IMG/VR virus record: IMGVR_UViG_3300028864_000014
Coordinates: 62,001-126,000 of that record
Length of the DNA: 64,000 nt
Reading direction: 5' to 3' (one strand)
This document shows, piece after piece, positions 3,298-61,361 of this stretch (positions are counted from its first letter, which is position 1; every line of letters begins with the position of its first letter). The position numbers and the translations under genes were made by a program. Under the pieces are notes generated by a model. It saw only the letters and a program-made list of their open reading frames with translations, did not search any database and was not told where the DNA came from.

Positions 3298-3801
3298 TCA
3301 ATCATAAGATTGACTTTCTTTTTCATTATCAAATATTTCTTGTAATTTAAGTTTACGTACAATTCTTTTAGATTCTGATAAAATTTCATCTTTTGATTTA
3401 TAACAAATAATATTATTCAAATCAATATACAATCTATCACTACATATTGAAGTTCTATAATATCTATACGTATCCATAGGAATATAGTCATCATAATATA
3501 TAGGTCTGCGTATTAAATATTTAAGATCATTATCAAGTAAGTATTTAAAATTATGCTGTACCTTTTTTAATATTTCAGAATAAACATCATTCCAATTTTC
3601 ACCAATTTTAGAATCCAAAAAATCAGACAAAGGTTTATTGTCATAATGATGACAATGATAATTGTCTCCATATTTTTTCATTGATTCATGATAAGGTAAA
3701 TCTGAAAACAAATCAATATCATTATTTCTTTTTGTTTTAACATATTGATATTGTCGTCTTGAAAAATTAGATCTTCTATATAAAAATTTATTTTTAAGCA
3801 T
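3298..3801 (-). CDS. hypothetical protein with RxxKL-type tag
   Basis: 167 aa ORF with IVRKLKLQEI near the C-terminus. Confidence 0.7.
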   Translation of the reverse strand: MLKNKFLYRRSNFSRRQYQYVKTKRNNDIDLFSDLPYHESMKKYGDNYHCHHYDNKPLSDFLDSKIGENWNDVYSEILKKVQHNFKYLLDNDLKYLIRRPIYYDDYIPMDTYRYYRTSICSDRLYIDLNNIICYKSKDEILSESKRIVRKLKLQEIFDNEKESQSYD

Positions 3802-3821
3802 AATTAGAAGTCATTAATTTT

Positions 3822-4268
3822 TTATGACTCCTTAATAAGATCTCTATATTTTGCAGCGGTTTCGTAATCTTCTACATTAACACAATCCAGCATTTTCTCA
3901 TTAAGAATTCCTTGTTGTATTCCACGTATTTCAGGATCATCATATTTATAATTTTCTATCAAATCTTGAAATATATTAAAATATTTTTCTGTTTCACGAA
4001 TAACATCTTCTTTTTTAAGATTAGCAACTTTAAACATATCTATCATATCAATATGTTCATTTACCTTTTTCATTTTATTATAAACACCATAAGCATCTAG
4101 CATAAGCTCATCAATATGTAAAACATTAGAATCCACTAAAACACTATCTATTGATATAGATTTATCAAGCAACATTTGATGATTAAATTTTTTGTGCTCA
4201 AATAAATAAAATGTTTGAACCCAAAAAATAAGGGTTCTGATGTCGTTAACATTAATCTTTGTTTTCAT
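3822..4268 (-). CDS. protein with C-terminal UVR (UvrB/UvrC-type) coiled-coil motif
   Basis: C-terminal EKMLDCVNVEDYETAAKYRDLIKE fits the UVR pattern (M..AV..EdYE.AA.lRD.I). Confidence 0.75.
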   Translation of the reverse strand: MKTKINVNDIRTLIFWVQTFYLFEHKKFNHQMLLDKSISIDSVLVDSNVLHIDELMLDAYGVYNKMKKVNEHIDMIDMFKVANLKKEDVIRETEKYFNIFQDLIENYKYDDPEIRGIQQGILNEKMLDCVNVEDYETAAKYRDLIKES

Positions 4269-4281
4269 AATTTCAATATAA

Positions 4282-4674
4282 TTATTTAAATTGTTTTATT
4301 TTTTCTTTTTCAATAATCTCATCAATAATAATCAAATCACTAAGAGATAAACTATTAAGAATATTATTAAAATCATCTAAATTTAGTGATTTTATTTTTT
4401 CTATTAATTCTTCAATAAATGGAATTTTTTCTAATCGTTCAAGTTTATCCGCTCTTTCTTTTTTTATATCTGGACCTGGTTTCAATTTACCTGATTTGTA
4501 TAAATCTATCAAATCTTTACTTTCTTTCAATCCTAATTTAGAATATTCTTTCATCATTTTAACAGACATAATATATTCAGTTCCTGAAATGTATGCTTCA
4601 AATTCAGATTTGTGATCAAATAAAATTTTTGCGCCTAATATTAAATGATCTGCATTAATAATTACTGAATTCAT
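4282..4674 (-). CDS. ribosomal protein bL12 C-terminal-domain-like protein
   Basis: MSVKMMKEYSKLGLKESKDLID resembles the bL12 signature I.VIK.VRE.tgLGLKEAKdLV. Confidence 0.6.
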   Translation of the reverse strand: MNSVIINADHLILGAKILFDHKSEFEAYISGTEYIMSVKMMKEYSKLGLKESKDLIDLYKSGKLKPGPDIKKERADKLERLEKIPFIEELIEKIKSLNLDDFNNILNSLSLSDLIIIDEIIEKEKIKQFK

Positions 4675-4715
4675 AATGAAATATTTTATTTAAAATTATA
4701 CATCTATTTATGCAG

Positions 4716-4746
4716 CAAAGATAATACAATATTTTTAAATAACAAA
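4716..4746 (-). promoter_or_regulatory. Bacteroidota sigmaA-type promoter (-33 TTTG / -7 TATCTTTG)
   Basis: Minus strand TATCTTTG at 4723-4716 with TTTG at 4746-4743 (19 nt spacing), upstream of 4674. Confidence 0.75.
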
Positions 4747-4748
4747 AA

Positions 4749-5060
4749 CTAATTGAATATTTTTTTCAATTTCTTTTTTCTTAGCATTTTTATTCCACCA
4801 ATAATCTCTACATTATCAAACTTAAATTCTTCACGTTCATTTTTTTTAGAAACATACAAAGTACTATACATTACTAACAAAAAGTATTGTTCTTTGAAAA
4901 GTGGATGGTCTTTTTTTATTTTATTTTTCAATTGAAATGTTTTCAATTGAAATAAATATGTAATAAAAGCATCACTTTTTGAAGATAACTCAATAGGATT
5001 TTTATTTTTTATATGAAAATCAATATCCTTAATGAAATCATATAATTGATAATTTGACAT
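4749..5060 (-). CDS. hypothetical protein with RxxKL-type C-terminal tag
   Basis: Ends MLRKKKLKKIFN. Confidence 0.7.
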   Translation of the reverse strand: MSNYQLYDFIKDIDFHIKNKNPIELSSKSDAFITYLFQLKTFQLKNKIKKDHPLFKEQYFLLVMYSTLYVSKKNEREEFKFDNVEIIGGIKMLRKKKLKKIFN

Positions 5061-5065
5061 AATTT

Positions 5066-6268: not shown

Positions 6269-6274
6269 ATTAAC

Positions 6275-7088: not shown

Positions 7089-9434
7089 TTAGGCTATTGC
7101 ATCTACTATCGTGGTTGCATCAAATACTAATTTATTAACTCCTGTTGAACTAACAAATAAAATTTTTGTGTATGTAAGATAAACATAAGTTGATATTGTA
7201 AAATTAGAATGTGAAAAATTATTATTAACCTGATTTGACTGAAAATTACTACCAATAACATTAAACATAAAGTTACATCCGATATTATTTCCAGTAAAAT
7301 TATTTCCAACAGTATTTTGTGTATATTCATTTCCTATTATATTAACACTAAAATCACTTCCGATTACATTAGTAACAAAATTGTCTTCTATTGAGTTAGC
7401 TTGAAAATTCGAAATAATGTTATTATTACTGAAATTGGTTCCAATTCTATTACCTGCAAAATTGTCACCTGATATGATATTAATTTGAAATCTATCACCA
7501 ACAATATTAGACGTAAAATTATTATCTATAGTATTCTGATAAAATCCATTACCAATATCATTTGAATCAAATCCAGATTTAATATTATTCTGATAAAATC
7601 CATTTTTAATTGAATTAGAATTAAAAAGATTTGTGATTATATTATATCGAAAATTATACCCAATAATATTAATTTTAAAATTGTCACCAATTTTATTATA
7701 TTGAAAATTATCACAAACAATATTATTAATAAAATTAATACCAATAATATTATGATGATGCAGATTATTCATTATATTATATTGAAAATTAGACTTAATA
7801 ATATTGTTAAAAAATTGAATTTTAATATTATTATACATAAATGTTGCTCCAATTGAATTAGTATAAAAAGAATATTTTATCACATTAAGTACAAAATTCT
7901 TTGAAATTATATTTTTTGAAAAATTTTGTCCAATTGAATTTTGACTAAATCCATAACCAATTGAATTACCTTCATTAATATTTCCGTTATAATAACCAAA
8001 ATAATTACCAATTGAATTATTATTAAAATTGGATCCAATTGAGTTGTGCATAAACCCACTTCCAATTGAGTTATTATAAAAACTTTCACCAATTGAGTTA
8101 TTAGTAAAATTAAATCCTATCGTGTTACCATAAAATATATTTCCAAAAATAACACTAGTACAATTATTAAGAATATTATTATATCCATTATAAGATCCTA
8201 TATGATTATTATAAATATTACTAGTATATGACACAAACATAGCATAGTCTGAATATAATGTTGTACAAGGTATATTTGAGTTTATGTTATTATAATTAAT
8301 TGCAGTTGTACTCACATAACTTAAATTATTCCATTCAAATAATTTCCAAACATTGTCATTATCAGAAGATGGATTAATTCCAGTCACTCCACTATTTAAA
8401 CAAACATAAATAGTTACTCCACTATATAAAACTACATCATTATTGTTATATGTAGTTGAAGGATCCCAAATATTAGTAACATTTATTTGCCATCTACGAA
8501 ACTTAACATTTCTAAAATCAAAAGGAATATTATTATTCTGAAGAGTATCAATTCTTCTATAAATATAACCCTTTGTACAACCAGGTACAATTGCTTGATC
8601 ACTTACTGAATTATAATAAATTATATCTTTAGGATATAAAACTGAATAAGCTTCAGGTTTTAATGTGTTTGAGCTACTTGCAGTTACTAATAAAGGTTCT
8701 GTTATTCCACTATTGATATCAGAAGTACCTACAATAGTATGAACTGTCTGATAATCTGTAATCGAATAAGTTCTATTAATATTTAATCCATTAGAAAGGA
8801 TCAAAGCTCTCAAATCTGCATATAATATATTAGTGACACCTGATGTAGTATTTATTCCATTTATTCCATTTATTCCATTTATTCCTGATGTTCCATTTGT
8901 ACCACTCGCACCTGATGATCCATTAGTTCCATTTGATCCATTAGTTCCATTTATACCTGATGTACCAGTTTGACCATTTATACCTGATGTACCAGTTTGA
9001 CCATTTATACCTGATGTACCTGATGACCCAGCTGGTCCAATTGGAATATTAGTATATGACAGCACTCCATCAACATCTGAAACTAATATTTTACCTACTC
9101 CATATCCAGGAGATAAACAAGTAATACCAGATTCAATATTTATATTTTTAGTGTGTAGAGTATCAGTATCTGAGTCAAAATATAAAGTATCAGTTGTTGT
9201 ACCAGAATCTTCAAAAAAATACATTTGTTTTATTGTATTTTCTCCTACTCTCATCCACACATTTTCATCCGTTTCATTAAGAAAAAACTCTCCGATATAA
9301 ATATCAGTTGTTCTCCATGATGGTAGCAATGTATGATCATCATGTGATCCTCCCAACGCTGGAATTGTTGCAACATCACCAGAAACAGTATTTCGTTTTA
9401 CAATAACTCTACTATATTTTTCAACTTTAGACAT
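7089..9434 (-). CDS. tail fibre-like protein (GxxG low-complexity stalk plus N-x-IG-x-NF beta-helix repeats)
   Basis: GSSGTSGINGQTG repeats, then a long run of NNxIGxNF repeats. Likely start is ATG 9434 (MSKVEK) rather than TTG 9476. Confidence 0.7.
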   Translation of the reverse strand: MSKVEKYSRVIVKRNTVSGDVATIPALGGSHDDHTLLPSWRTTDIYIGEFFLNETDENVWMRVGENTIKQMYFFEDSGTTTDTLYFDSDTDTLHTKNINIESGITCLSPGYGVGKILVSDVDGVLSYTNIPIGPAGSSGTSGINGQTGTSGINGQTGTSGINGTNGSNGTNGSSGASGTNGTSGINGINGINGINTTSGVTNILYADLRALILSNGLNINRTYSITDYQTVHTIVGTSDINSGITEPLLVTASSSNTLKPEAYSVLYPKDIIYYNSVSDQAIVPGCTKGYIYRRIDTLQNNNIPFDFRNVKFRRWQINVTNIWDPSTTYNNNDVVLYSGVTIYVCLNSGVTGINPSSDNDNVWKLFEWNNLSYVSTTAINYNNINSNIPCTTLYSDYAMFVSYTSNIYNNHIGSYNGYNNILNNCTSVIFGNIFYGNTIGFNFTNNSIGESFYNNSIGSGFMHNSIGSNFNNNSIGNYFGYYNGNINEGNSIGYGFSQNSIGQNFSKNIISKNFVLNVIKYSFYTNSIGATFMYNNIKIQFFNNIIKSNFQYNIMNNLHHHNIIGINFINNIVCDNFQYNKIGDNFKINIIGYNFRYNIITNLFNSNSIKNGFYQNNIKSGFDSNDIGNGFYQNTIDNNFTSNIVGDRFQINIISGDNFAGNRIGTNFSNNNIISNFQANSIEDNFVTNVIGSDFSVNIIGNEYTQNTVGNNFTGNNIGCNFMFNVIGSNFQSNQVNNNFSHSNFTISTYVYLTYTKILFVSSTGVNKLVFDATTIVDAIA
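8851..9020. repeat. in-frame tandem repeats (9, 18 and 27 bp units)
   Basis: TTTATTCCA about 4 copies (8851-8886), GATCCATTAGTTCCATTT x2 (8917-8952), CCATTTATACCTGATGTACCAGTTTGA about 2.7 copies (8947-9020). Confidence 0.9.
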
Positions 9435-9490
9435 TAATAATTTATTATTTTTATTATATATTATTTTATTAAACAAAAAATATACACTTT

Positions 9491-11644: not shown

Positions 11645-11695
11645 CTATAAACTTTATTTCTTTAGTTGTATATATTAAAAATAAATAAGGTAATT

Positions 11696-11944
11696 ATGAA
11701 AGTCATAAAAAAAGGTAGCATTGTAACTCAGGATAAAAATTTTTTTTATTATTGGACATGTCCAAAATTTAAATTAGAAGTAATTAAAATTGATGGACGA
11801 ATAGCTTATTTTAAATATGACATTATAATGAAAAATTCAAATAATATAATGCAATCAACTAAAAGCATAAACATTGATTATATAAAAATAGACATATCAG
11901 AAACAAGAAAACAAAAATTATTAAAAATAAATGAGCGAATTTGA
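11696..11944 (+). CDS. hypothetical protein with RxxKL-type tag
   Basis: Likely start ATG 11696; ends ETRKQKLLKINERI. Confidence 0.7.
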   Translation: MKVIKKGSIVTQDKNFFYYWTCPKFKLEVIKIDGRIAYFKYDIIMKNSNNIMQSTKSINIDYIKIDISETRKQKLLKINERI

Positions 11945-12263
11945 TGAAATAAATTCCTTAAAAGAAGGAACAGAAAAAATAGATAAACTAATAAATTTCT
12001 ATAAAGTAACGGTAAAAATTAATGAATGGTTAAATGGGACAAATAAAAATTCTATTATACACTTCAAAGATAGAATTGAATATAAAAGAAATAATCAATA
12101 TCATAGACTAAATGGACCTGCTATTGATTATGAGAATGAAGACAAAAATAAATATTACTATAAGGGAATATTATACAATTCAAAAGATGAATGGTCGAAG
12201 ATTACACAAAAAGAAGTAAGAAAAACAAAACTAAAAAGAATAAAAAAAGAAAGTTCAGAATAA
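11931..12263 (+). CDS. HRxxGPA-motif protein with RxxKL-type tag
   Basis: YHRLNGPAIDY...YYYKG motif common in phage and giant-virus small proteins; ends EVRKTKLKRI. Confidence 0.7.
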   Translation: MSEFDEINSLKEGTEKIDKLINFYKVTVKINEWLNGTNKNSIIHFKDRIEYKRNNQYHRLNGPAIDYENEDKNKYYYKGILYNSKDEWSKITQKEVRKTKLKRIKKESSE

Positions 12264-15074: not shown

Positions 15075-15084
15075 ATTTTTCTTT

Positions 15085-20384: not shown

Positions 20385-20730
20385 TTTTTGAATCTGATAT
20401 GCATGTTTTTCCTACAATATTCAATTCTCCTTTTTTTATCATATCTAATAGAGTAGGAATTGTATATGTAATAACATCACTAATTAATATAAATGTATCA
20501 TATTTACCGTATTTATCACCATGTATAAATTCATCTAAATCCATTTTTGAGATTTCTTCTGTGCCATCTTTGAAAATTGTATTAACTACAACTAATTGAT
20601 TTTTTTTTAATTTATCATAACATTCATGAGTAGAAATATTTACACCATCTGTTAAATTATTTGTATCTGGATTAAGAACAAATAAAAATAAATTACCATC
20701 TATTCTTAATACCACGCCATCATACTTCAT
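20362..20730 (-). CDS. hypothetical protein
   Basis: 122 aa ORF overlapping both neighbours. Confidence 0.65.
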   Translation of the reverse strand: MKYDGVVLRIDGNLFLFVLNPDTNNLTDGVNISTHECYDKLKKNQLVVVNTIFKDGTEEISKMDLDEFIHGDKYGKYDTFILISDVITYTIPTLLDMIKKGELNIVGKTCISDSKNDDKNDE

Positions 20731-20971
20731 ATATCTTTATTAATTTTAAATATCTACTTAACTTTTTATTATTTTCTACTAATCTGTTTATATCTATTAT
20801 AACATCATTTATTGATAAAAAATCAATATTATTTAAATTATATGCAAAAAATTCTATTACATCAATTCTTTTTTCAAAAAATTTATTTTTTGGACTTCCA
20901 CATTTTTTAGCATAAACTAAGTGAAAACCATCAAAACTATCTATCTTATCATCAATTATTCCTTTTAACAT
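20720..20971 (-). CDS. hypothetical protein
   Basis: 83 aa ORF. Confidence 0.55.
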   Translation of the reverse strand: MLKGIIDDKIDSFDGFHLVYAKKCGSPKNKFFEKRIDVIEFFAYNLNNIDFLSINDVIIDINRLVENNKKLSRYLKLIKIYEV

Positions 20972-26343: not shown

Positions 26344-26455
26344 GTAGGTATATATATAATTATTTTTCAAAAAATATAAACAATTTAAATATTTTTCTAT
26401 AATATAAAAAGTATAATTTTTTCAAATAATTATACAATATTTCAAATTAAATTGT

Positions 26456-30279: not shown

Positions 30280-30519
30280 ATGGGAGTTGTAAGAACTATT
30301 AAAGGAGATGATGGTAAGCCATATATATCATTGGAGGATTTGATTGGTGAAGTTGAAGAAGCCAGGAATTTTAGTATAGAATACAATAAAGAGGGTAAGA
30401 GAAAAATTGATTTTGTGGAGATTATATTATCAACATTACATAATATGGAAAAAGATTATTATGAGAAATATCTATTTAGAAGAAATGATGACGAAAAAAA
30501 AGATAATGATAAATTATGA
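30280..30519 (+). CDS. hypothetical protein
   Basis: 79 aa ORF. Confidence 0.65.
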   Translation: MGVVRTIKGDDGKPYISLEDLIGEVEEARNFSIEYNKEGKRKIDFVEIILSTLHNMEKDYYEKYLFRRNDDEKKDNDKL

Positions 30520-31085
30520 TAACAATCGACAGTAATTTTATTAATCGTGCGATCATTAAATGGAGTCCTATTATTAATACTTTAAATATCGATAAAAGAT
30601 TTGAAGAACCTATTTCTATTTTTTCTGAATTGTGCTCATTTAATCACAATAATTTACATATATCAAATAGTATTTATGATGATAATATTTTACCGATTTC
30701 AATAAGAACGTTATCAAAATTAAAATTAGAAAATGTCAAATTAGTTATAGGCACAAAAAATTATTATGAATTTAATACATATCAAATAAAAATTAAATTT
30801 TCTATTAATCAAGAAGAAGAATTTAAAATGATATCTGGAACAGATGTTATTACCATGTTATCATCATCATTTGTAGAAGAAATTTCCACCAATATTAATG
30901 ATAAAATAGAAAAAGAAAAACTTAACATTCTTATAATAGATAGTAATTTTATTAGTAATATTGAAAGATTTCCAGAGTGTGTTTTATTGTCATATAGATT
31001 TATATTAACCAGCATAAAAAAAGAAAGATGTGATAAGATAAATAAGATAAATAAGATAAATAAATATAAGCCTGGTGACTTATAA
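30516..31085 (+). CDS. hypothetical protein whose N-terminus resembles that of T4-like major capsid proteins
   Basis: IIKWSPIINTL versus T4 gp23 LNKWKPLLEG; loose RxxK-type tail ERCDKINKINKINK. Confidence 0.5.
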   Translation: MITIDSNFINRAIIKWSPIINTLNIDKRFEEPISIFSELCSFNHNNLHISNSIYDDNILPISIRTLSKLKLENVKLVIGTKNYYEFNTYQIKIKFSINQEEEFKMISGTDVITMLSSSFVEEISTNINDKIEKEKLNILIIDSNFISNIERFPECVLLSYRFILTSIKKERCDKINKINKINKYKPGDL

Positions 31086-36422: not shown

Positions 36423-37052
36423 TCAAACAACGTTATCATTATATCTTTCCTTATTAGAGCATTCTGGAATGACTCTTATTTTAGGTATTATAGGTATTTT
36501 TAGTTCTTTTTCTTCAGATTCTTTAATCTTAATTAATCCAAAAATTGCATAATTAATCATATCAAAATAATTTGCATCGATACCTTCCGATATTATTGTT
36601 TTTCCATCATTATCTTCAATTTGTTTAGTTCTATAAATTTTCATTAAAATCAAATCTGTATAAGATTCCATTCTCATTGATCTCCATGCCTCACCATAAT
36701 CATGATTTTTATTCATCATCAATTCCTTAGATTTCTGTATATATTTATCGTATAATTTTATTCCATCATCATATGATAAATCATCTGAATTTGAATATCC
36801 TAGTTCTAATTGAATTAACCCCATTATTCCATAATTTACAATAGCTATCAACTCAGAATTTATTCCTTCATTTATTTTTATTACCGATTTGGTTTCAATA
36901 CTTCTGATTCTATTCGCTTTTATGAATATCTGATCTGTAACAGAGGTAGGTCTTAATATTCTCCAAGCTGCACCATAATCTTTCATTTTTTTAGCGTAAA
37001 TATCAGAGCAATTGTTTATTATTTGATTAAATTGTTCATTTGTTTTATTCAT
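36423..37052 (-). CDS. DUF1599 (nucleotide-modification-associated domain 1) protein, two repeats
   Basis: KKMKDYGAAWR...DQIFIKANRI and NKNHDYGEAWR...DLILMKIYRT, each followed by NY.I.GLI. Confidence 0.85.
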   Translation of the reverse strand: MNKTNEQFNQIINNCSDIYAKKMKDYGAAWRILRPTSVTDQIFIKANRIRSIETKSVIKINEGINSELIAIVNYGIMGLIQLELGYSNSDDLSYDDGIKLYDKYIQKSKELMMNKNHDYGEAWRSMRMESYTDLILMKIYRTKQIEDNDGKTIISEGIDANYFDMINYAIFGLIKIKESEEKELKIPIIPKIRVIPECSNKERYNDNVV

Positions 37053-37662
37053 TGTTTTTTAATATTTTATTTAGTTTATCTGATCTTTTTTCCTTCACTG
37101 ATAATCTTTCATTATCATATAGAATTTTATCAAATTTGAATTTTACTTTCAATTTACTTAAACTACAGTACCCATTATTGAATTTGAAATTATTTTCAAT
37201 GTCAATAAATTGAAATTTTGTGTAACATAATGTTAATAAGTCAGATATCACAATTTTTACTGATATTTCTTTTTTGTCACTTATTAATTCCATTAATTTT
37301 TCATACGGTTGCATTCTATTGCCAATCATCTTACAATTAAAAACAAAAGTATTATCATTAATTTCACATATAGTATCAGATAATATTTTATCATCATCAT
37401 CTAATTCAAAATAAACAGAATAAGACAAATCATCTAACTCATCTTTTTTTTCACTTGATTTCCACATGGAACCATATGAGCTAACAGGTACTCCAGTATA
37501 AACACCAGGAGAACCATTATAAATAGTAGAATAATATGGATTTGTATTTGTATTTGTATATGTATCAGAACATGCACTAAAAATACCTGATGATATGTTT
37601 GATATTGAAGTAGCTGCAGATTTTGATTTACTTGATGCGTATGAACTTGTGTTTAATGACAT
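37045..37662 (-). CDS. hypothetical protein with RxxKL-type tag
   Basis: Ser-rich N-terminus; ends EKRSDKLNKILKNNE. Confidence 0.7.
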   Translation of the reverse strand: MSLNTSSYASSKSKSAATSISNISSGIFSACSDTYTNTNTNPYYSTIYNGSPGVYTGVPVSSYGSMWKSSEKKDELDDLSYSVYFELDDDDKILSDTICEINDNTFVFNCKMIGNRMQPYEKLMELISDKKEISVKIVISDLLTLCYTKFQFIDIENNFKFNNGYCSLSKLKVKFKFDKILYDNERLSVKEKRSDKLNKILKNNE

Positions 37663-42283: not shown

Positions 42284-42508
42284 ATGGTATATAAGAATTA
42301 CGGTAATTGGAATTTAGAAAATTCAATAGAGATTGATGATTTAGCTTATAAATTATATCTTATTGAGTTTGATAAAAAATATTTAAAAGGAAGTCCATAT
42401 TTAGATCAAAAAACTTTTCGTATGTATTATGTAAATGAAGATAAATATTACAAAAATGCAAAAAGAAAAATTAGACTTAAAAAAATAAAACAATTAGAAA
42501 AAAAATAA
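42284..42508 (+). CDS. small RxxKL-type protein, paralog of 56618..56881
   Basis: GNWNLENSIEIDDLAY; ends RKIRLKKIKQLEKK. Confidence 0.7.
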   Translation: MVYKNYGNWNLENSIEIDDLAYKLYLIEFDKKYLKGSPYLDQKTFRMYYVNEDKYYKNAKRKIRLKKIKQLEKK

Positions 42509-49965: not shown

Positions 49966-50679
49966 ATGTCTAAGATAAAAATTAATAATGAGTACGCTGT
50001 AAGAATAAATCATCCAGAACTTGGAGTTTTCTATTTCTCATATTGCGGGCTCAATGAAAAATTTAATCCGTTTGTTTTTACTAAAATTTTATCTAAAGTT
50101 CAAACTTGGAAAACTATAAAATTTGCAGAAAAACAAATAAATATAATTATATCACAGTTGGAATCTAATGAAGGTAAAATTTATTTATCTCTTGGAACAA
50201 ATATAGAGTGTGAATATACATCTAAAATTTTTCAATCCAGAAAAAAATATTATTATCTTATTGACTCGATACAAAATGTTAGATCAAAAATAAATTTAAT
50301 AACAGCAAATAAAAACGTTAACAATTTAAATGTTACATTAATTGAAGATTCAGAAGAAATTTGTAATGTTTATAAAAATATAAAAAATAATTTTTTCATA
50401 AATAAAATTAAAAAACTAGATAATTGTGATGTTGATTTTGATGAAATATTAAAATATTCAAATGATACATTATTATCTATAAATACATACAATGCAATTC
50501 AAAATGAATTAGTACTTAAAGTGAATAACTATCTTGAAGATATCTCATTATATAAAAAAGATATTTCAATCTTAGAAGATTCTAAAACTTATAAAGGATT
50601 ATATTTAGATATTATAGATGCATCTTATGGATTTAGAAGATTAAAATTAAATACACTTAATTTATTACAAGATAATTAA
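49966..50679 (+). CDS. hypothetical protein with RxxKL-type tag
   Basis: Ends FRRLKLNTLNLLQDN. Confidence 0.7.
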   Translation: MSKIKINNEYAVRINHPELGVFYFSYCGLNEKFNPFVFTKILSKVQTWKTIKFAEKQINIIISQLESNEGKIYLSLGTNIECEYTSKIFQSRKKYYYLIDSIQNVRSKINLITANKNVNNLNVTLIEDSEEICNVYKNIKNNFFINKIKKLDNCDVDFDEILKYSNDTLLSINTYNAIQNELVLKVNNYLEDISLYKKDISILEDSKTYKGLYLDIIDASYGFRRLKLNTLNLLQDN

Positions 50680-53214: not shown

Positions 53215-53529
53215 ATGATTAACTTAGATATAAATATTGGTGTAGGTAATGGAAGTAATAAACTTACTATAAATGTAGAATCAATTAAATCATTCAATAG
53301 AAAAAAAGTAGAAATTGAAAAAATGTTAAGTTATTATTTTTTTGAATTTGATACAGAAAATGTCAGAAATGAGATAAAAGAAAATGTATTGAGAATTCTG
53401 AGTAATGATTTAATAAGTACCAGAATAGAAAAACTTAAAAAATTAAATGATATTTGTGAAGGTGATAATAAATTAAAAAATTATCATCAATACAATATCA
53501 TCAATAATATTGAAATAATAAAAAAATAA
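53215..53529 (+). CDS. tail-sheath C-terminal-like fragment with RxxKL tag
   Basis: YYFFEFDTENVRNEIKENV versus T4 gp18 YRLFELNNAFTRSSFR; TRIEKLKKL. Confidence 0.5.
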   Translation: MINLDINIGVGNGSNKLTINVESIKSFNRKKVEIEKMLSYYFFEFDTENVRNEIKENVLRILSNDLISTRIEKLKKLNDICEGDNKLKNYHQYNIINNIEIIKK

Positions 53530-53534: not shown

Positions 53535-54002
53535 ATGGCAATAGCACAGTTTTCTAATAGTTTGAATAGCTTACATGATGTAGAGCCTATTTATCTAACA
53601 CAATTTGAAGTTAGATTTAATAATACTTTTTTGACTGATAATTGTAGTTCTATAAAAAACGATATTATGATTTTTAATTTATATACTGTTAATGATGAAT
53701 TACAACCATTTCAGATTATAAATAATATGATTAATAATAATACTATTATAAATTATTTAGAAATTATAAATAGTAAAAAAGATGGTACTATAAAATATTG
53801 CTCTTTTTTGAAAAATTTCTCATTTGTCGAAATTTTAGGATTTCTTGATTTTGATTGGGATTCATGGGATAAAAGTGATTCAAAAATTAAAGATTTACGT
53901 GTAAAATTTAAATATGATAAAATGGATGTAGTCACATCAAAAAATTATAACAATTTTTTAAGAAAAATTAAACTTGAGTGCATAACTAAAAAAGATTCAT
54001 AA
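53535..54002 (+). CDS. tail-tube-like degenerate protein with RxxKL tag
   Basis: MAIAQFSNS...EPIYLTQFEVRF resembles N-termini of jumbo-phage tube proteins as I recall them; ends LRKIKLECI. Confidence 0.5.
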   Translation: MAIAQFSNSLNSLHDVEPIYLTQFEVRFNNTFLTDNCSSIKNDIMIFNLYTVNDELQPFQIINNMINNNTIINYLEIINSKKDGTIKYCSFLKNFSFVEILGFLDFDWDSWDKSDSKIKDLRVKFKYDKMDVVTSKNYNNFLRKIKLECITKKDS

Positions 54003-54538: not shown

Positions 54539-55045
54539 ATGAAAAAATTTGAAACCGTATTTAAGACTTGGATAGGGAAAAATACGAATTCACAAATCAA
54601 AGCAATTGATAAAATTTCATCTGAAACAGGAATTGACGCCGAAGATTGGTTCTTTAATAATTTCTTACGTTTACAAACTGGTGATTTTAGTGGAACTGAT
54701 TTTTTAGAGGTACTACTTGAAAATTATTTATGTAATTTGACTCATAAATTTGAAAAAATTGTAGGAGAATATTTAGAAAGCACAGGAACTAGTTTTTATG
54801 GTGAGCCAATATATGATATAGATATTACATTGGATTATGATTATAAAAAAAATTGTATAGTTATTGACGAACAATATGGAAATAAATCTGATATTGAAAA
54901 AATAATAAAATCAATATCTCTTGATAATAAAATACTATTAACTAAAAATAAAATATTTACATACGTCATTAATGAAACAAAATTAAATATATTCTCAGAA
55001 AAAGAAGCAAGAATATTAAAATTGAAACAATTGAATGAAATATAA
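54539..55045 (+). CDS. hypothetical protein with RxxKL tag
   Basis: Ends EARILKLKQLNEI. Confidence 0.75.
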   Translation: MKKFETVFKTWIGKNTNSQIKAIDKISSETGIDAEDWFFNNFLRLQTGDFSGTDFLEVLLENYLCNLTHKFEKIVGEYLESTGTSFYGEPIYDIDITLDYDYKKNCIVIDEQYGNKSDIEKIIKSISLDNKILLTKNKIFTYVINETKLNIFSEKEARILKLKQLNEI

Positions 55046-55256
55046 AATTGGCGATATTATCATTTTTAATAAATCTAAAAAATCAAAATCAATCATAATA
55101 GAAATTATTCATCAACATTTATTTCATTATTATAGATTTAGATTTATTGATGAAAATAATACTCACATTATGAGTTGTGAAAATGTAGATAATTCATCAG
55201 AATTCTATATTAATTATATAAGAAAAGAAAAATTAAAAAATATAAATGAAATATAA
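55035..55256 (+). CDS. MKYKIGDI (SH3/KOW-like) cassette protein with RxxKL tag
   Basis: MKYKIGDII...IRKEKLKNINEI. Confidence 0.75.
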   Translation: MKYKIGDIIIFNKSKKSKSIIIEIIHQHLFHYYRFRFIDENNTHIMSCENVDNSSEFYINYIRKEKLKNINEI

Positions 55257-55471
55257 AATAGGTGATATTATCATTTTTGAAAGTTTCAAAACAAAAATAG
55301 TAAGAATTATTAATAGTAATAATTGTTATGAAATACATACATTTTTTAATAATCAAACATACACACAAGTTGTTCAATCTGAATATGTAGATAGATGCTC
55401 AAAAATAGATATTAAATCTATGAGAAAAGAAAAATTAAAAAATTTAAATGAAATATAAAATAGGTGATATT
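55221..55471 (+). repeat. two 49-bp direct repeats spanning gene junctions (one mismatch)
   Basis: AGAAAAGAAAAATTAAAAAAT(A/T)TAAATGAAATATAAAATAGGTGATATT at 55221-55269 and 55423-55471. Confidence 0.9.
55246..55458 (+). CDS. MKYKIGDI cassette protein with RxxKL tag
   Basis: MKYKIGDII...MRKEKLKNLNEI. Confidence 0.75.
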   Translation: MKYKIGDIIIFESFKTKIVRIINSNNCYEIHTFFNNQTYTQVVQSEYVDRCSKIDIKSMRKEKLKNLNEI

Positions 55472-55669
55472 GTGGTTGGCGAAATTTTAAAAATTAAAAT
55501 AGTAAGTATTTTAAATAATAAATATGAATATCGTTTAATGTGCTGTAAAAATCCAAAAGTCACAAATTGGACTACTGAATCAATAGACAATAAAACAGAA
55601 TTAGATAAACAATATTTAAGAAAAGAAAAATTAAAAAAATTATATGATACTTCAGCAATGGCTAAATAA
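55448..55669 (+). CDS. MKYKIGDI cassette protein with RxxKL tag
   Basis: MKYKIGDIV...LRKEKLKKLYD. Confidence 0.75.
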   Translation: MKYKIGDIVVGEILKIKIVSILNNKYEYRLMCCKNPKVTNWTTESIDNKTELDKQYLRKEKLKKLYDTSAMAK

Positions 55670-56225
55670 TCCTGATTTTTTGGATAAAAATCAGTTTGAA
55701 AAAAGAAAAGTATTAAAAAGAAGCATATTATCAGATAAATATTGTTTAGTAGGTAAAACATATATATGCTTTGATAATGAAAACTATTGCTCAAATATGA
55801 GATTTTATAGTTCTAATAGCTATTGTAATTTGACTATAGGTAAATCATATGAAATATTAGATCATAAAATTGGTAAGGTAAGAATACTAAATGATAGCAA
55901 CAAAAAAATTTGGACTACAATTAATAGATTTATATATTCAATAAAATATGAAAGAAAAGATAAATTAAAAAAAATATCTAAATCAGATGATGAAATTTTT
56001 ATTGACATATCAGAAAAAAAATTGATTTGTGTTTTATGCGGACAAGAATGGGGAATAGAAAATAAATTCACAAATACATGTGAAAATGTTGAATGTAATG
56101 GCTTTTGTACATGGGGATATTATCCAATGATACCAGAAAGTTTCACAATTGATGATAATGGATTTTGGCATTTAATACCTTTTCCTAAGGATTTAAAAGA
56201 ATTATATAATTATAAAATTAAATAA
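55644..56225 (+). CDS. hypothetical protein with internal RxxKL tag and C-terminal Cys-rich (Zn-binding-like) domain
   Basis: Internal ERKDKLKKI, then CVLCG...CENVECNGFC. Confidence 0.7.
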   Translation: MILQQWLNNPDFLDKNQFEKRKVLKRSILSDKYCLVGKTYICFDNENYCSNMRFYSSNSYCNLTIGKSYEILDHKIGKVRILNDSNKKIWTTINRFIYSIKYERKDKLKKISKSDDEIFIDISEKKLICVLCGQEWGIENKFTNTCENVECNGFCTWGYYPMIPESFTIDDNGFWHLIPFPKDLKELYNYKIK

Positions 56226-56617: not shown

Positions 56618-56881
56618 ATGATAATTGATAAAGGTTGGGGATATTGGGATTTGAAAAATTCCACAAGACTTGATGATATTGCATATTATTCATTTGTTCA
56701 AGATTATGTGAAGGACTATAAAGATTCAATATCATTTATGTCAAATATGGATTATGAACCACCTGATCAAACTTGGTTTTATTATCAAAGAAATAAAAAT
56801 AGTCATTATTCTTATCATTACAATAGTGCAAATAATTTTTTAAGAAAAGAAAAACTTGTTAAATTAAAAGAAATACAATAA
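56618..56881 (+). CDS. small RxxKL-tagged protein, paralog of 42284..42508
   Basis: GYWDLKNSTRLDDIAY...LRKEKLVKL. Confidence 0.7.
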   Translation: MIIDKGWGYWDLKNSTRLDDIAYYSFVQDYVKDYKDSISFMSNMDYEPPDQTWFYYQRNKNSHYSYHYNSANNFLRKEKLVKLKEIQ

Positions 56882-56884: not shown

Positions 56885-57562
56885 ATGAAAAAGAAAATAG
56901 TAATATTCACTGGTGCTGGAATAAGTGCAGAAAGCGGAATTCAAACTTTCAGGGATTCTGACGGACTTTGGGAGCAATATGATGTAAAAGACGTTGCAAC
57001 TATTGATGGTTGGAGAAAAGATAGACAATTAGTTTTAAAATTTTATAATGAAAGACATAAACAATTAGATACTGTAGAACCTAATTCAGCTCATTACTTT
57101 CTTGCTGAATTGGAAAAAAAGTATGATGTTCAGATAGTTACTCAAAATGTCGACGATCTCCATGAGAGAGCAGGAAGTACAAATGTTCTACATCTTCATG
57201 GACAATTAACAAAGATGAGAGCATTTAATAATTTTACTGTTTATGATTGGCCAAAAGATTTTGACATACAAACAGATAGTGTGGATGAAAATGGCGATAC
57301 ATTAAGACCACATATTGTTTGGTTTGGAGAAGCTGTTCCAAATATGGGTAAAGCTGAAAAAATAACAAAAGAAGCAGATATACTTATTGTAATTGGAACA
57401 TCATTACAAGTTTATCCTGCAGCAAATTTATTATATAAAGCAAATTTTAGAGCACCTATATATTATATTGATCCTTCTGATTCTGATATTGGTATAGATA
57501 TTAAAAATTTTACTCATATAAAAGAAACAGCAACAGAAGGAGTTAAAAAATTAAAATTGTGA
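56885..57562 (+). CDS. cobB: Sir2-family NAD-dependent protein deacylase
   Basis: GAGISAESGIQTFR, TQNVDDLHE, LHLHG, RPHIVWFGE and GTSLQVYPAA. Confidence 0.95.
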   Translation: MKKKIVIFTGAGISAESGIQTFRDSDGLWEQYDVKDVATIDGWRKDRQLVLKFYNERHKQLDTVEPNSAHYFLAELEKKYDVQIVTQNVDDLHERAGSTNVLHLHGQLTKMRAFNNFTVYDWPKDFDIQTDSVDENGDTLRPHIVWFGEAVPNMGKAEKITKEADILIVIGTSLQVYPAANLLYKANFRAPIYYIDPSDSDIGIDIKNFTHIKETATEGVKKLKL

Positions 57563-57879
57563 TGATAGAAAATAAAAGTGAAAAATACGGAAAATATTAT
57601 GGAGAGTTAGTTGATTTTGACTACACTGCAAATATGATATATTCAGATTGGAGCGAGAGAGAGACTTCAATGTTTTGTGAACAACTAGAAGAATACGGAG
57701 TAACAGAAATAATTTTTGACGTTGAAGATGGGGAAAATGAAAATAAATACTCATCAACATTATATATTGAAACAACAGATGAAACAGATTACAAAAAACT
57801 TATGATGTTAATTTTATCAAAACATCCTGATGAGTTTTCAGAAGAAACAAATAATCACTTTAGATTTTGGGTTGATTAA
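57559..57879 (+). CDS. acidic hypothetical protein
   Basis: 106 aa ORF overlapping the cobB stop. Confidence 0.65.
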   Translation: MMIENKSEKYGKYYGELVDFDYTANMIYSDWSERETSMFCEQLEEYGVTEIIFDVEDGENENKYSSTLYIETTDETDYKKLMMLILSKHPDEFSEETNNHFRFWVD

Positions 57880-57909: not shown

Positions 57910-58350
57910 ATGCCAAGTGTTACAGAAAAATTAGAAGAATATTTAAAATTTTTAAAAACTCCTGAGGGAGAAGAAAGCATTCTTGAATTTCAAAAAGTAA
58001 TTCAATTGGAAGAAGATATCAAAAATATAAACATTGAAAGAGTAAAAAAAATGTTCAATGATCAAGAAACTTTTGATTCTTTAGTCAATAGAATAATAAG
58101 AAAAAATGGAGAAGAATGGAGGGACAAATGTTACAAAAATGGTTGTACCCCATATCCAACTCAACTATTATACTCGTTGTTTGATTTAGCAGAAAAAGAA
58201 GGAACTGAAATAACAGAATCTATTGATGATTTTACAAGTCATTTTCCGTCTGACATCTGTGAATATAACGGTTGGCAATTTGCTTTGACATATGGTCAAG
58301 GTACATGTAGTAGTATATACTACAATAAAAAATTAATGTATAGAGATTGA
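57910..58350 (+). CDS. hypothetical protein
   Basis: 146 aa ORF. Confidence 0.65.
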   Translation: MPSVTEKLEEYLKFLKTPEGEESILEFQKVIQLEEDIKNINIERVKKMFNDQETFDSLVNRIIRKNGEEWRDKCYKNGCTPYPTQLLYSLFDLAEKEGTEITESIDDFTSHFPSDICEYNGWQFALTYGQGTCSSIYYNKKLMYRD

Positions 58351-58604
58351 ATTCAATTAAAACAGTAAAATCAAGATATAGTATAACTACAATTTCACCA
58401 AATTTTTATAGTAATTTGTCATTAAGTGGCAATACAAATGATATTATTTCTGGTTCAACTGGATTATTAGAGCAAGGTTATATATTTGTTCCTTATATAA
58501 TGGCTACAACAACATCAATTATTACTGAATCAAGAGAACGTAAGATAAACAGACTAAGAGAAGAAAGAGTAGAAAAACTTAAAAAATTAGGATGGAATGA
58601 CTGA
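58347..58604 (+). CDS. small protein with gp23-like G-Y-x-x-x-P-Y motif and RxxKL tag
   Basis: LLEQGYIFVPYIMAT versus T4 gp23 DAGIYYAPYVALT; ERVEKLKKL. Confidence 0.55.
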   Translation: MNSIKTVKSRYSITTISPNFYSNLSLSGNTNDIISGSTGLLEQGYIFVPYIMATTTSIITESRERKINRLREERVEKLKKLGWND

Positions 58605-58875
58605 TAAAAAATATAAACAAGGAGATGAAGTTGTATGTATTAATAATGATGGAGGTTATGATAAATATTTAACAATTGGAAAAAAATATAAAATTCATTA
58701 TATTTATAAAGGAAAATTAACCAATTTAGATCATTTTAGGATAAAATCTGACAAAATAAATTCATTTTTTATAAGTCCATTAGGAATAATTTTTTTATCA
58801 CCAAATGAGTTTAAAATTAAGAAAAGAAAAGAAAAATTAGAAAAAATCAATAAATTAATTTTTAATGATATTTAA
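58597..58875 (+). CDS. GDEVVCI (SH3-like) protein with RxxKL tag
   Basis: QGDEVVCINN...LTIGKKY...RKEKLEKI. Confidence 0.75.
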   Translation: MTDKKYKQGDEVVCINNDGGYDKYLTIGKKYKIHYIYKGKLTNLDHFRIKSDKINSFFISPLGIIFLSPNEFKIKKRKEKLEKINKLIFNDI

Positions 58876-59113
58876 TCAAGGAGATGAAGTTGTTTGTATT
58901 CAAAATGTTGGTTATACTGATTTTTTAACAATTAGCAAATCATATAAAGTTTTACTTTCCTACTATGGAAGTGTAACAGAAACTGAACATATACGTGTTC
59001 AGAAAGATGATAAAAATGGTCATGTTGATATATTTAGTAGTAGATTTATATCTATCAAAGAATTCAAAAAAATAAAAAGAAAAGAAAAACTAAATATATT
59101 AAATCTAATATAA
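58865..59113 (+). CDS. GDEVVCI (SH3-like) protein with RxxKL tag
   Basis: QGDEVVCIQN...LTISKSY...RKEKLNIL. Confidence 0.75.
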   Translation: MIFNQGDEVVCIQNVGYTDFLTISKSYKVLLSYYGSVTETEHIRVQKDDKNGHVDIFSSRFISIKEFKKIKRKEKLNILNLI

Positions 59114-59363: not shown

Positions 59364-59794
59364 TTTTAGATATAATCAAATATGATGATTCTAACTCAGG
59401 AAAATTAAGAAAACTAAATGTAAATGTAAAAAAGGAAAATCCTTTTTTGCTTTCACTTATTAAAAATATGTTTGAAACTCTTAATTATCACAAATTTGAA
59501 TTTGGGTTATCTGCTCCACAAGTTGGACATAACTTAAATTTATTTGTTATTAATAATCCTGATTTAAAAGAAGTATTTATTAATCCAGAAATATATTTAG
59601 AAGGACTTTTTATTCAAAACAAAGAAAGATGTTTAAGCTTACCAAATTTAGAATTTCCTATAAATAGGAGATCAATTGTTAAGATTAAATATTATGATAT
59701 AAATTGGAATTATAAAATGTCTTCGTTTAAAGATTTAAATGCCATAGCTATTCAACATCAATTTGATCATATTAACGGAAAATTAATTATTTGA
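59360..59794 (+). CDS. def: peptide deformylase-like protein with degenerate active site
   Basis: GLSAPQVG, VFINPEI, ERCLS (canonical EGCLS) and QHQFDHING (canonical QHEMDHL.G). Confidence 0.85.
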   Translation: MILDIIKYDDSNSGKLRKLNVNVKKENPFLLSLIKNMFETLNYHKFEFGLSAPQVGHNLNLFVINNPDLKEVFINPEIYLEGLFIQNKERCLSLPNLEFPINRRSIVKIKYYDINWNYKMSSFKDLNAIAIQHQFDHINGKLII

Positions 59795-60177
59795 TGAATA
59801 TATTTAATAGAAAAAAAAGGGAATTAAAAAGGGAACTAAAATACAATGAACTGAACAAATTATTCAGGATTAAACATGGTATAATTTGTAATTGGAGGAT
59901 TAAAAAATATACTTTGCATCCAACTACAGTTGAAGGACTTGTTTTTGATGAAAAGTTTAATTCATTTTTTTTGAGAGAATATGGAATATTTCCACATTCC
60001 TTTAATGAGTTTGCTTGTATTAACTATTCCTTTGATCCAAAATTTGATAATTTTCCAGTTGATAAATTACAGGAATTATATAATAAAATTGAGTCTGTTT
60101 TTCCTGATCCATTTATTAAAATTAATAGATTAAAAAAATTAAAAAATATTAATTCTGTTAAATATGAAGAACGGTGA
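59791..60177 (+). CDS. hypothetical protein with RxxKL-type tag
   Basis: Ends INRLKKLKNINS. Confidence 0.7.
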   Translation: MMNIFNRKKRELKRELKYNELNKLFRIKHGIICNWRIKKYTLHPTTVEGLVFDEKFNSFFLREYGIFPHSFNEFACINYSFDPKFDNFPVDKLQELYNKIESVFPDPFIKINRLKKLKNINSVKYEER

Positions 60178-60394
60178 TAAAATTACTTATATTAGTAACG
60201 ATATTTGTGTTTTTGATAAATATAAAACATATACTATTATTAATATACACAATGATATTATAACATATGTGAGTTATCTTGATAATTATAAAAAGTTATG
60301 GTATATAGGTTGTAGTTATACTATGAATAAATTCATAACATATAATCAATATAGAAAATTAAAATTAAATAAAATTAATGAAAAAATATGTTAG
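60164..60394 (+). CDS. SH3-like small protein with RxxKL tag
   Basis: MKNGDKITYI...YRKLKLNKI. Confidence 0.7.
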   Translation: MKNGDKITYISNDICVFDKYKTYTIINIHNDIITYVSYLDNYKKLWYIGCSYTMNKFITYNQYRKLKLNKINEKIC

Positions 60395-60570
60395 TAAAAG
60401 AATTAATAGAAAAAATAGAAGAATTAAGAGTAATATATCCTAATATTGATGATATTGAAATTGGACCACTTTTTAATGGTGATTTAGTGATGATGATTAG
60501 TGATTTGACAATAGAAGAAGGCTCAGGATGGGAAACTGACGATGCAATTGGCATTATTTGGAATTGTTAA
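60388..60570 (+). CDS. hypothetical protein
   Basis: 60 aa acidic ORF (MLVKELIEKIEEL). Confidence 0.6.
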   Translation: MLVKELIEKIEELRVIYPNIDDIEIGPLFNGDLVMMISDLTIEEGSGWETDDAIGIIWNC

Positions 60571-60597
60571 GTTTTTATAAAAAATAATAAATATTAA

Positions 60598-60840
60598 ATG
60601 TTAGAAGAAATCATAAATAACTATCCAGATGAAGGAATTTTATCTGCTGATGGATTGGATGATGCAGTAATTGGATTAGAAATGAATTCAATGAGGTTAA
60701 TATATTCAGTATCTAAATGTATTGAAATTTTTATCAATGATGGAATGACAGAAGAAGAAGCATTAGAATTCTTTGAATTTAATACAGCAGGATCTTATAT
60801 GGGTGAACACACTCCAATATGGTGCTACGATGATTTTTAA
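60598..60840 (+). CDS. conserved phage hypothetical protein
   Basis: ADGLDDAVIG...YS..KC...GMTEEEALEFFEFN..GSYMGEHTPI is a family I recognise from environmental phages. Confidence 0.75.
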   Translation: MLEEIINNYPDEGILSADGLDDAVIGLEMNSMRLIYSVSKCIEIFINDGMTEEEALEFFEFNTAGSYMGEHTPIWCYDDF

Positions 60841-60900
60841 TTGATATAAAAATAAATAATTTTTTTATATCAATTATTTTCATTATATTTGTAAAAAAAT

Positions 60901-61101
60901 ATGAAAGATAAAAAATCAGATGAAATATATTCAAATTGGGTCAAAGAATCAGGAATAAAAGATTTAACTGGTAACCAATCAAAATTTGTCAAAATGATTA
61001 TATCAAATAGAAAAATTATCTGTGAAATCGGAAGTTTTAATAAAGTTTTTGTTAGCATTTATAAATATTTGAAAAATAATCGTGAAAAATTAGAAGATTA
61101 A
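60901..61101 (+). CDS. hypothetical protein
   Basis: 66 aa ORF. Confidence 0.55.
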   Translation: MKDKKSDEIYSNWVKESGIKDLTGNQSKFVKMIISNRKIICEIGSFNKVFVSIYKYLKNNREKLED

Positions 61102-61103
61102 AT

Positions 61104-61361
61104 ATGAAATCAATACTTTACAAAAAAGGTGAAAAATTTGTTTGTATAGATAATACATCTAGATATACTGGAGTAGAATTAGGCTATTCTTCTTTGACGT
61201 TATTGAAAATTGGCGGTGTTTACACATTTCGTGATATTAATAGTTATGGCGAAATGAATTTTTTGGAACTACGCGGATATAGTTTCAGAAAGCAAAGGTT
61301 TGTGAAATATTCAGAGTTAAGAAAGATAAAATTAGAAAAATTAAATACTATAAACATATAA
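61104..61361 (+). CDS. SH3-like small protein with RxxKL tag
   Basis: KKGEKFVCIDN...LRKIKLEKL. Confidence 0.75.
   Translation: MKSILYKKGEKFVCIDNTSRYTGVELGYSSLTLLKIGGVYTFRDINSYGEMNFLELRGYSFRKQRFVKYSELRKIKLEKLNTINI

Follow-up and report, generated by a model that had tools for sequence, protein, structure and literature searches.

A basic C-terminal helix shared by diverse small proteins in a clade of uncultured, AT-rich huge phages

About a quarter of the proteins encoded in a 64,000-nucleotide stretch of an uncultured huge phage carry a shared basic C-terminal helix with the consensus R-K-x-K-L-x-K-I/L, referred to here as the tail. The stretch as a whole (the window) corresponds to positions ~62,001-126,000 of IMGVR_UViG_3300028864_000014, a 235-kb viral contig, and was compared with the related contigs L004, which is syntenic with the window, L029, L031, L034 and L036. 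The tail is present in excess over chance, evolves under purifying selection, is helical in structure models, is modular with respect to the folds that bear it, is specific to phages and is spread clade-wide.

Frequency, position and spread of the tail

The motif R..KL..[IL] was present in 22 of the 101 non-overlapping open reading frames (ORFs) of the window, compared with 0.79 expected from per-protein shuffles (maximum of 5 in 2000 shuffles). In 19 ORFs it lay no more than 12 residues from the C-terminus, where the same shuffles predicted 0.07 and shuffling of the last 25 residues only predicted 0.18, and the reversed motif occurred just once. A position matrix trained on 69 instances, all from other genomes, placed 24 window ORFs above the 99% level of the null and 21 above the 99.9% level. 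The window has a guanine-plus-cytosine (GC) content of 21-27% (the genome is given as 23% GC), and Lys, Ile and Leu make up 10%, 11% and 8% of its residues, a composition that might itself yield such motifs by chance. Against this stand the observed counts, the single reversed motif and the orthologues, which keep precisely the four defining positions, as well as natural AT-rich controls: similarly composed loci of other huge phages (LR756504, LR756500 and LR756501, ~41 kb each) contained no C-terminal motif at all. We therefore rejected a compositional artefact, which has next to no likelihood of being right; Lys-rich composition as the sole cause had already been raised as an objection in the initial annotation of this DNA, and it is contradicted by the shuffles, the reversed motif and the AT-rich controls alike.

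That annotation had listed 21 ORFs, all of which hold the motif where it was placed apart from small corrections: the ORF called 11696 is 11666-11944, ORF 42284 carries only the variant RKIRLKKI with Arg at position 4, and in ORF 53215, described as having the motif near the C-terminus, it lies 27 residues from the end (3 residues in the L004 orthologue). Beyond that list we found tails in 20720-20971(-) and, in internal or variant form, in 4282-4674(-) and 30516-31085. The scale originally proposed, about 21 proteins, was too low, as the feature is clade-wide and extends to hundreds to thousands of metagenomic proteins. L031 has 27 tail-bearers in 20 kb, and the tail is borne by 29 of 32 ORFs in an 11-kb L034 array and by 16 of 28 in L036. 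A profile built from the tail joined to the SH3-like body described below retrieved 2880 cluster representatives (E <=1e-3) among 1.84 billion metagenomic clusters, and the strict C-terminal motif was present in 114 of its 130 best small matches; none of ten matches looked up had a useful name. In the distant huge phages LR756502 and LR745206 a variant tail, R-[NED]-x-K-[LI]-x-x-[LI], is found at the C-terminus of 5 and 6 proteins in 41 kb, where 0.1 would be expected. Three carrier queries gave no tblastn match in 50,697 GenBank phage records, and the tail profile retrieved nothing significant from PDB sequences (best E values of 0.75 and 0.92, both from AT-rich organisms). Nothing in the literature, PDB sequences or family libraries that we searched describes this tail. 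As a kind, short peptides for docking or addressing are already known; what is new is the sequence, its position and, above all, its scale.

Selection, helical structure and modularity

Selection on the tail was assessed in 28 orthologue comparisons of the window with L004 and L029. R1 showed no nonsynonymous and one synonymous change, K4 did not change at all, and L5 showed one nonsynonymous and nine synonymous changes, while positions 6 and 7 were altered in 57% of comparisons and 38% of the codons in the carrier bodies had changed nonsynonymously. Leu5 is encoded by TTA (12), CTT (5), CTA (3) and TTG (2), in proportions as in genome usage, while six codons occur at position 8. Four amino acids, and not the nucleotides behind them, are therefore under constraint. 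On these comparisons of orthologues and codons the tail is under purifying selection at the protein level. Orthologues of 37045 retain R-x-D-K-[LI]-K-x-[IL] down to 40% identity, and the internal tail of 55644 is conserved in its orthologues as RRDKLKNI and RRDKLKQI. The L004 orthologue of 53215 (L004:1897-2139) stops 3 residues past the motif and the window and L029 copies run for 25-27 more, from which we read that a shift of the stop codon made a terminal tail internal. Carriers diverge faster than their neighbours (mean identity 63% vs 85%, p 6e-5), and carrier genes are gained and lost between close relatives.

The consensus of 89 instances extends beyond the core motif, as K(-3) E(-2) hydrophobic(-1) R K x K L x K [LI] N. 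In AlphaFold2 models of two unrelated bodies the tail is predicted to be helical: the motif occupies the second half of a helix of 18-20 residues that begins 8 residues before R1 in both, namely helix 64-81 of 58865 (predicted local distance difference test score, pLDDT, 93.7 overall and 91-96 along the helix) and helix 135-154 of 53535 (pLDDT 74). On a helical wheel R1, K4, L5 and I/L8, together with the flanking hydrophobic residues, fall within ~140 degrees, and the mean net charge is +3.4 over 14 residues. The initial annotation had described a short basic amphipathic helix; short, basic and helical agree with the models, but amphipathicity is weak. Like the membrane-targeting helices of MinD and FtsA, the tail is a short basic C-terminal helix that can be moved between proteins, yet its mean hydrophobic moment of 0.22 and mean hydrophobicity of 0.10 compare with 0.55-0.61 and 0.40 for the Escherichia coli MinD and FtsA peptides. 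With too low a moment and a tail too polar for insertion, we rejected a membrane-targeting helix, and the membrane localisation that had been offered as one option is unlikely. A coiled coil was likewise rejected, as it would need three to four heptads with conserved a and d positions in a helix of only 18-20 residues; the only fixed hydrophobic positions are L5 and I/L8, and the preceding core position is Arg. A degron that requires a free C-terminus, as in ssrA-like tags or substrates of tail-specific proteases, was rejected because 2-11 variable residues follow the motif; the conserved internal copies in 55644 and 53215 also run counter to a requirement for a free carboxyl group.

The proteins that carry this helix are otherwise diverse. 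The body of 58865 is an SH3-, chromo-barrel- or KOW-like barrel, and its AlphaFold2 model fits an architecture of five strands plus a helix; Foldseek support is weak (E >=0.03, TM score ~0.5), with matches that include the MRG15 chromo-barrel and PWWP domains. Proteins 53535 and 37045 have a tail-tube/Hcp fold: 50 of the 50 best PDB matches were tube or Hcp proteins (best E 5e-3). A family of SH3-like barrels with an added helix therefore cannot define the tail. Protein 53535 sits inside an array of small accessory genes, and 37045 has a Ser/Thr-rich N-terminus of 70 residues and conserved synteny beside a 628-residue protein (37743-39629) that gave no PDB, Pfam or PHROG match and only a weak lectin-like lead; 37045 therefore cannot be called the true tail tube.

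Among 651 unique ORFs in the sampled clade loci, 148 carry the tail, and their bodies, compared by BLAST after removal of the helix, form 75 clusters. An iterative SH3 hidden Markov model reached 45 of the 148 carriers and left 60 body clusters beyond its reach. With two different folds and 75 body clusters, we rejected expansion of a single paralogous family as the full cause of the pattern. One carrier is a 202-residue protein, L036:1301-1909(-), in which a domain of Tad3, an inhibitor of type I Thoeris, (E 3e-32) is followed by the tail RLKKLKQI; no other carrier has an annotated function. Other carriers in the related contigs include a DUF6794 protein and Cys-rich proteins, and Pfam, PHROGs and NCBIfam recognised nothing on the carriers but Tad3 and this DUF6794 in a related contig. 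The proposal of a module portable on unrelated bodies thus holds for SH3-like barrels, the tail-tube/Hcp-like fold, Tad3, DUF6794 and Zn-ribbon-like proteins. The SH3 body also exists without the tail. It was found in three Bacteroidota metagenome-assembled genomes (MAGs) assigned to Bernardetiaceae, Cytophagales and unclassified Bacteroidetes (MFKPGDKVICI..., at L038:6001-6300, L040:5989-6303 and around L039:6001-6192), in two of which it lies directly 3' of an unannotated ORF of 442 residues, and in proteins with 3-7 SH3 repeats. Internal tails occur at the domain junction of 55644 and also in two-module proteins. The tail is portable across unrelated folds and absent from the cellular SH3 homologues.

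Tail-bearing genes and their context

Carriers on the minus strand include the 167-residue ORF 3298..3801, with RKLKLQEI at nucleotides 3334-3357, 11 residues before the stop and with no co-directional gene downstream; the 103-residue ORF 4749..5060, with RKKKLKKI (4758-4781) 2 residues before the stop; and the 205-residue protein 37045..37662, in which the Ser/Thr-rich N-terminus and tail-tube/Hcp-like body are followed by RSDKLNKI (37063-37086). Three carriers are additions to the original list. The 83-residue ORF 20720..20971(-) ends in RYLKLIKI (20732-20755; matrix score 11.3), the 130-residue ORF 4282..4674(-) has an internal RADKLERL (4432-4455) that lies 49 residues from the end, possibly by chance, with a weak similarity to the L7/L12 C-terminal domain upstream of it, and the 189-residue ORF 30516..31085(+) has the variant RCDKINKI (31026-31049), with Leu5 replaced by Ile and a borderline matrix score of 10.2.

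All remaining carriers are on the plus strand. The 92-residue ORF 11666..11944 ends in RKQKLLKI (11906-11929) and is followed by the 110-residue ORF 11931..12263, with an HRLNGPA-type body and the tail RKTKLKRI (12219-12242). The 74-residue ORF 42284..42508, a paralogue of 56618, has its Arg4 variant at 42464-42487, and the 237-residue ORF 49966..50679 has RRLKLNTL at 50635-50658; a convergent gene comes next, so that there is no downstream start for this tail to serve. Further along lie the 104-residue ORF 53215..53529 (RIEKLKKL, 53422-53445), the 155-residue tail-tube/Hcp-like protein 53535..54002, a paralogue of 37045, with RKIKLECI at residues 143-150 (53961-53984), and the 168-residue ORF 54539..55045 (RILKLKQL, 55010-55033). 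Three paralogues of an MKYKIGD family follow: 55035..55256 (73 residues; RKEKLKNI, 55221-55244, with the next ATG 1 nucleotide past the motif), 55246..55458 (70 residues; RKEKLKNL, 55423-55446) and 55448..55669 (73 residues; RKEKLKKL, 55619-55642). In the two-part protein 55644..56225 (193 residues) the N-terminal part ends in RKDKLKKI (residues 104-111, 55953-55976) and a Cys-rich C-terminal part is added. The 87-residue ORF 56618..56881 has RKEKLVKL (56843-56866), identical in its L004 orthologue, and the 85-residue ORF 58347..58604 has RVEKLKKL (58566-58589). SH3-like carriers are 58597..58875 (92 residues; RKEKLEKI, 58825-58848), the barrel 58865..59113 (82 residues; RKEKLNIL at residues 72-79, 59078-59101, within its helix), 60164..60394 (76 residues; RKLKLNKI, 60353-60376) and 61104..61361 (85 residues; RKIKLEKL, 61320-61343). 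The 128-residue ORF 59791..60177 (RLKKLKNI, 60127-60150) is absent from L004 and present in L029.

Tail genes overlap the next co-directional gene in 75% of cases (median -11 nucleotides), compared with 23% of other genes (median gap +14 nucleotides; p 1e-17), with overlaps of 8-26 nucleotides in the 53-62 kb part of the window and in L031, L034 and L036, and the next ATG mostly lies 1-14 nucleotides after the motif. The residues past the motif are therefore largely the first codons of the next gene read out of frame; the ending N-E-I-stop, for example, derives from ATGAAATATAAA. Lacking a dedicated stop, the upstream ORF terminates at the first one met out of frame, so that the protein in effect ends, functionally, at the motif. 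This arrangement, in phage genes that lack Shine-Dalgarno sequences and have A-rich leaders, could also mean that the A-rich tail codons are the initiation region or a coupling element of the overlapping gene and the peptide a by-product. Such a signal would demand conserved nucleotides at a fixed spacing, and we rejected it as very improbable: Leu5 changes synonymously in 9 of 28 comparisons and uses four codons, the distance from motif to next ATG varies (standard deviation 28 nucleotides), 16 of 131 tails have no downstream gene (49966 and 3298 among them), the preferences for K2, K7 and N9 are equal with and without overlap, and ordinary leaders show no AGA...AAA-YTN pattern.

Across all genes of the window and the related loci, Shine-Dalgarno sequences are nearly absent at start codons (1%), and leaders are A-rich at -20 to -10 with A at -3. 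Leaders of this kind are typical of Bacteroidota, cellular homologues of the main carrier body were found only in Bacteroidota MAGs, and the host clade of these phages is probably Bacteroidota. Nothing pointed to recoded stop codons, since the long conserved ORFs run without interruption and each of the three stop codons is used to end orthologous genes. The 628-residue protein has GenBank matches only in the Al-Shayeb huge phages LR756501 and LR756503 (735 kb, 42% identity), as well as LR756502, LR745206 and LR756504, and a 65%-identical homologue of one small window protein was found on a 711-kb contig. Other genes of the window encode an S1-domain protein (42582-43736), NusG, thymidine kinase, an RNase H-like protein, a full DnaJ with J domain, Zn finger and C-terminal domain (1954-2961), a 1250-residue fusion of an SbcD/Mre11-type phosphoesterase with an SbcC/Rad50-type ATPase (26504-30256), that is, a fused SbcCD-like nuclease/ATPase, and a 795-residue protein with a collagen triple-helix repeat, probably a fibre (7089-9476(-)); gene calls in the syntenic relative add Sir2, peptide deformylase, an NAD-dependent ligase and ClpP.

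The window also contains a second shared-terminus class. Nine ORFs end in [KR]FN[IL]-stop: 14649-15152(-), 22797-23144, 23141-23482, 24263-24607(-), 24610-24948(-), 24964-25395(-), 25487-25924(-), 25921-26370(-) and 62318-62647. A start resembling the T4 capsid targeting sequence (CTS), M-x-K-x-F-x-x-F, is found in ORFs 236, 681, 41194, 43793, 44445, 45332 and 54023, a set partly separate from the first. As the initial annotation had stated, with the start of 54539 (MKKFET) left as ambiguous, neither feature coincides with the tail: none of the nine ORFs ending in KFN[IL] carries it, and the ORFs with CTS-like starts form a different set from the tail ORFs.

Possible functions and known counterparts

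The reading that we favour, at about an even chance of being right, is that one shared partner recognises the tail, which would serve as a portable helix for docking or addressing. We infer binding to a common partner because the four fixed residues lie on one face, the tail is independent of the body, it is specific to phages and its carriers evolve fast; a variable body with a constant tail would follow the logic of an address tag or adaptor. This clade of uncultured, very AT-rich huge phages adds the tail to a large set of small, fast-evolving accessory proteins with unrelated bodies. The tail makes up the final two turns of their short C-terminal alpha-helix, in which R1, K4, L5 and I/L8 share one face. 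The conserved face may insert into an acidic, hydrophobic groove of the shared partner, and many bodies would thereby be brought to the same machine or place. More tentatively, and with the balance tilted against it, the tail may be the address of a phage-encoded, proteome-scale sorting or turnover system in which one receptor reads a nine-residue helix on hundreds of accessory and anti-defence proteins. The receptor might then be ClpS-ClpC-ClpP, a virion or scaffold site or a compartment gate, and would set the place or lifetime of these proteins during infection.

The most concrete candidate partner, unlikely as we judge it to be and linked to the tail by circumstance only, is the phage ClpS, ClpC-type unfoldase and ClpP, with the tail as a turnover tag or tether. 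It is the most concrete because no part of the machine is missing and its gene order persists throughout the clade: the window encodes ClpS (31694-31987), an ORF of 92 residues (31989-32267) and a ClpC-type AAA+ protein (32277-34811) whose loop is of the GIGFG (IGF) type and whose middle region is UVR-like, in a relative the ClpP gene is found farther down the genome (L004:19024-19779), and ClpS-ClpC synteny is conserved in clade relatives at 60-86% identity. Co-occurrence of the tail and ClpC among five distant huge phages is a further, suggestive pattern that we did not use as evidence, the samples being of 41 kb and probably from sister genomes. A TPR protein beside ClpC (35248-36351) was dropped as a receptor, being conserved only in the closest relative. 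A 148-residue protein (3822-4268(-)) resembles McsA-like activators in having a UvrB/UvrC (UVR) motif at its end; the window proteins scanned did not include any McsB-like kinase, and phosphorylation of R1 by a McsA/McsB-type arginine kinase system is speculation. Further candidate partners are a virion or scaffold receptor, on the logic of T4 capsid targeting, a host hub and nucleic acid. Strongly acidic small proteins with isoelectric points (pI) of ~4.1-4.2 occur among the basic carriers (60598-60840, 60388-60570, 57559-57879 and 54023-54427(-)) and are much better conserved, 60598 being 96% and 89% identical in two relatives; they, too, are candidate partners of the basic helix.

Several observations weigh against a shared docking helix and, in particular, against Clp. 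Some of the carrier count stems from family expansion, given that a single SH3-like group of paralogues supplies about 30% of the carriers; the functional hint on the carriers comes from Tad3 alone; no partner of the tail was found in this analysis; and the high pLDDT along the helix of 58865 is compatible with packing on its own body. As regards Clp, LR756502 and LR745206 retain the core of the tail but show no detectable conservation of the ClpC N-domain (residues 1-180), and the tail is also kept at internal positions and on the conserved Hcp-like protein.

Two other explanations, both of which we consider quite improbable, need to be weighed against the docking helix. The helix might be intrinsic to the structure, capping or stabilising its domain or self-associating, and might have spread by expansion of a barrel-plus-helix family and recombination at gene ends, with no common external partner. 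An SH3-like barrel with a C-terminal helix is indeed a common small-protein architecture, as the Foldseek matches to the MRG15 chromo-barrel and PWWP domains illustrate, the model is confident along the helix and 45 of 148 carriers are SH3-like; but unrelated folds, and the 60 clusters outside the SH3 model, share one invariant set of four residues, whereas residues that pack on a body should change along with it. Moreover, cellular and multi-repeat SH3 homologues lack the helix, a single conserved a-d pair is too short for a coiled coil, and invariant Arg and Lys on the hydrophobic face would be unusual for self-packing. The tail might instead be a basic helix that binds nucleic acid, tethering its carriers to phage or host DNA, rRNA or mRNA and possibly packaging them with the genome. 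Its net charge, the preference for Lys at positions 2, 6 and 7 regardless of downstream overlap and the basic nature of most carriers (pI 8.5-9.8) are in line with this, and SH3-like proteins of the Sso7d type bind DNA. However, invariant Leu5 and Ile/Leu8, in an exact pattern of i, i+3, i+4 and i+7, suit a shaped groove better than a phosphate backbone, and some carriers are acidic overall (53535, pI 5.8; 54539, pI 5.1). In addition, orthologues show no exchange of Arg for Lys at position 1 or of Lys for Arg at position 4, even though 42284 has Arg there in its variant tail.

Among known systems, the closest analogy in logic would be the T4 CTS. The CTS is N-terminal (~10 residues after Met), is cut off by the prohead protease and is present on a handful of proteins. 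It is the sole feature common to diverse, fast-changing internal proteins, of which several are anti-defence proteins, and it sends them to a single destination (PMC3012670). The likeness extends to the carrier with a Tad3 anti-Thoeris domain; the tail differs in being C-terminal, helical, of another sequence and present on about a quarter of ORFs. We rejected membership of the T4-type CTS, the motif being C-terminal or internal in 24 of 24 ORFs. The RxLR motif of oomycetes and the PEXEL motif of Plasmodium are N-terminal trafficking motifs that follow a signal peptide in eukaryotic secretion. They too place one short motif on hundreds of fast-diversifying small proteins with unrelated bodies, but the tail is a C-terminal helix in a phage system and its carriers have no signal peptides. 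The ChAD of TAC antitoxins is a C-terminal extension that can sit on unrelated antitoxin families. It is described as an antitoxin element recognised by a dedicated SecB-like chaperone (10.1101/2024.02.24.581848). No SecB-like gene was seen among ~70 window proteins scanned, and the ChAD has another sequence and is found on one gene per system, in contrast to hundreds of tail carriers.

Tethers to AAA+ machines, such as the ClpX-binding C-motif-2 of MuA (RRKKAI), the XB peptide of SspB and the ClpC adaptors NblA and MecA, are short basic C-terminal peptides. The tail is also short, basic and C-terminal, and the phage encodes ClpS and a ClpC-type unfoldase, with ClpP in a relative; it differs in being a capped helix, in tolerating 2-11 trailing residues and internal positions, and in that the ClpC N-domain is not co-conserved with it. 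The scaffolding protein of P22 docks inside the procapsid through a C-terminal basic helix-turn-helix, and fusions to it load foreign cargo. Both place basic residues on a C-terminal helix, but the P22 element is the helix-turn-helix of one protein and the tail is a motif of many. Encapsulin cargo-loading peptides are C-terminal, Gly/Ser/Leu-rich and extended, and the cargo is encoded next to the shell gene. We rejected this class, the tail being Lys/Arg-rich and helical and its carriers lying in arrays of small genes; no Pfam match to an encapsulin shell family was found among the window proteins scanned. R-K-x-K also fits the monopartite nuclear localisation pattern K-(K/R)-x-(K/R), in what is the genome of a tailed phage with bacterial-type genes (ClpS/ClpC/ClpP, peptide deformylase and NusG) and Bacteroidota-type leaders.

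Huge phages have small genes with no assigned function by the hundred; a tag on a quarter of them offers a handle on this fraction, and the motif is a simple metagenome marker of this uncultured clade. The tag defines a fast-evolving repertoire that is probably directed at the host and includes one anti-Thoeris homologue, and as a shared tag it predicts a single receptor. If its role is in turnover or packaging, these phages would organise their own proteome by a sorting signal, and the tail would supply a small portable tag to load or destabilise proteins in Bacteroidota systems. It would then be a phage counterpart of RxLR/PEXEL or of the T4 CTS, extending over a fifth or more of the proteome.

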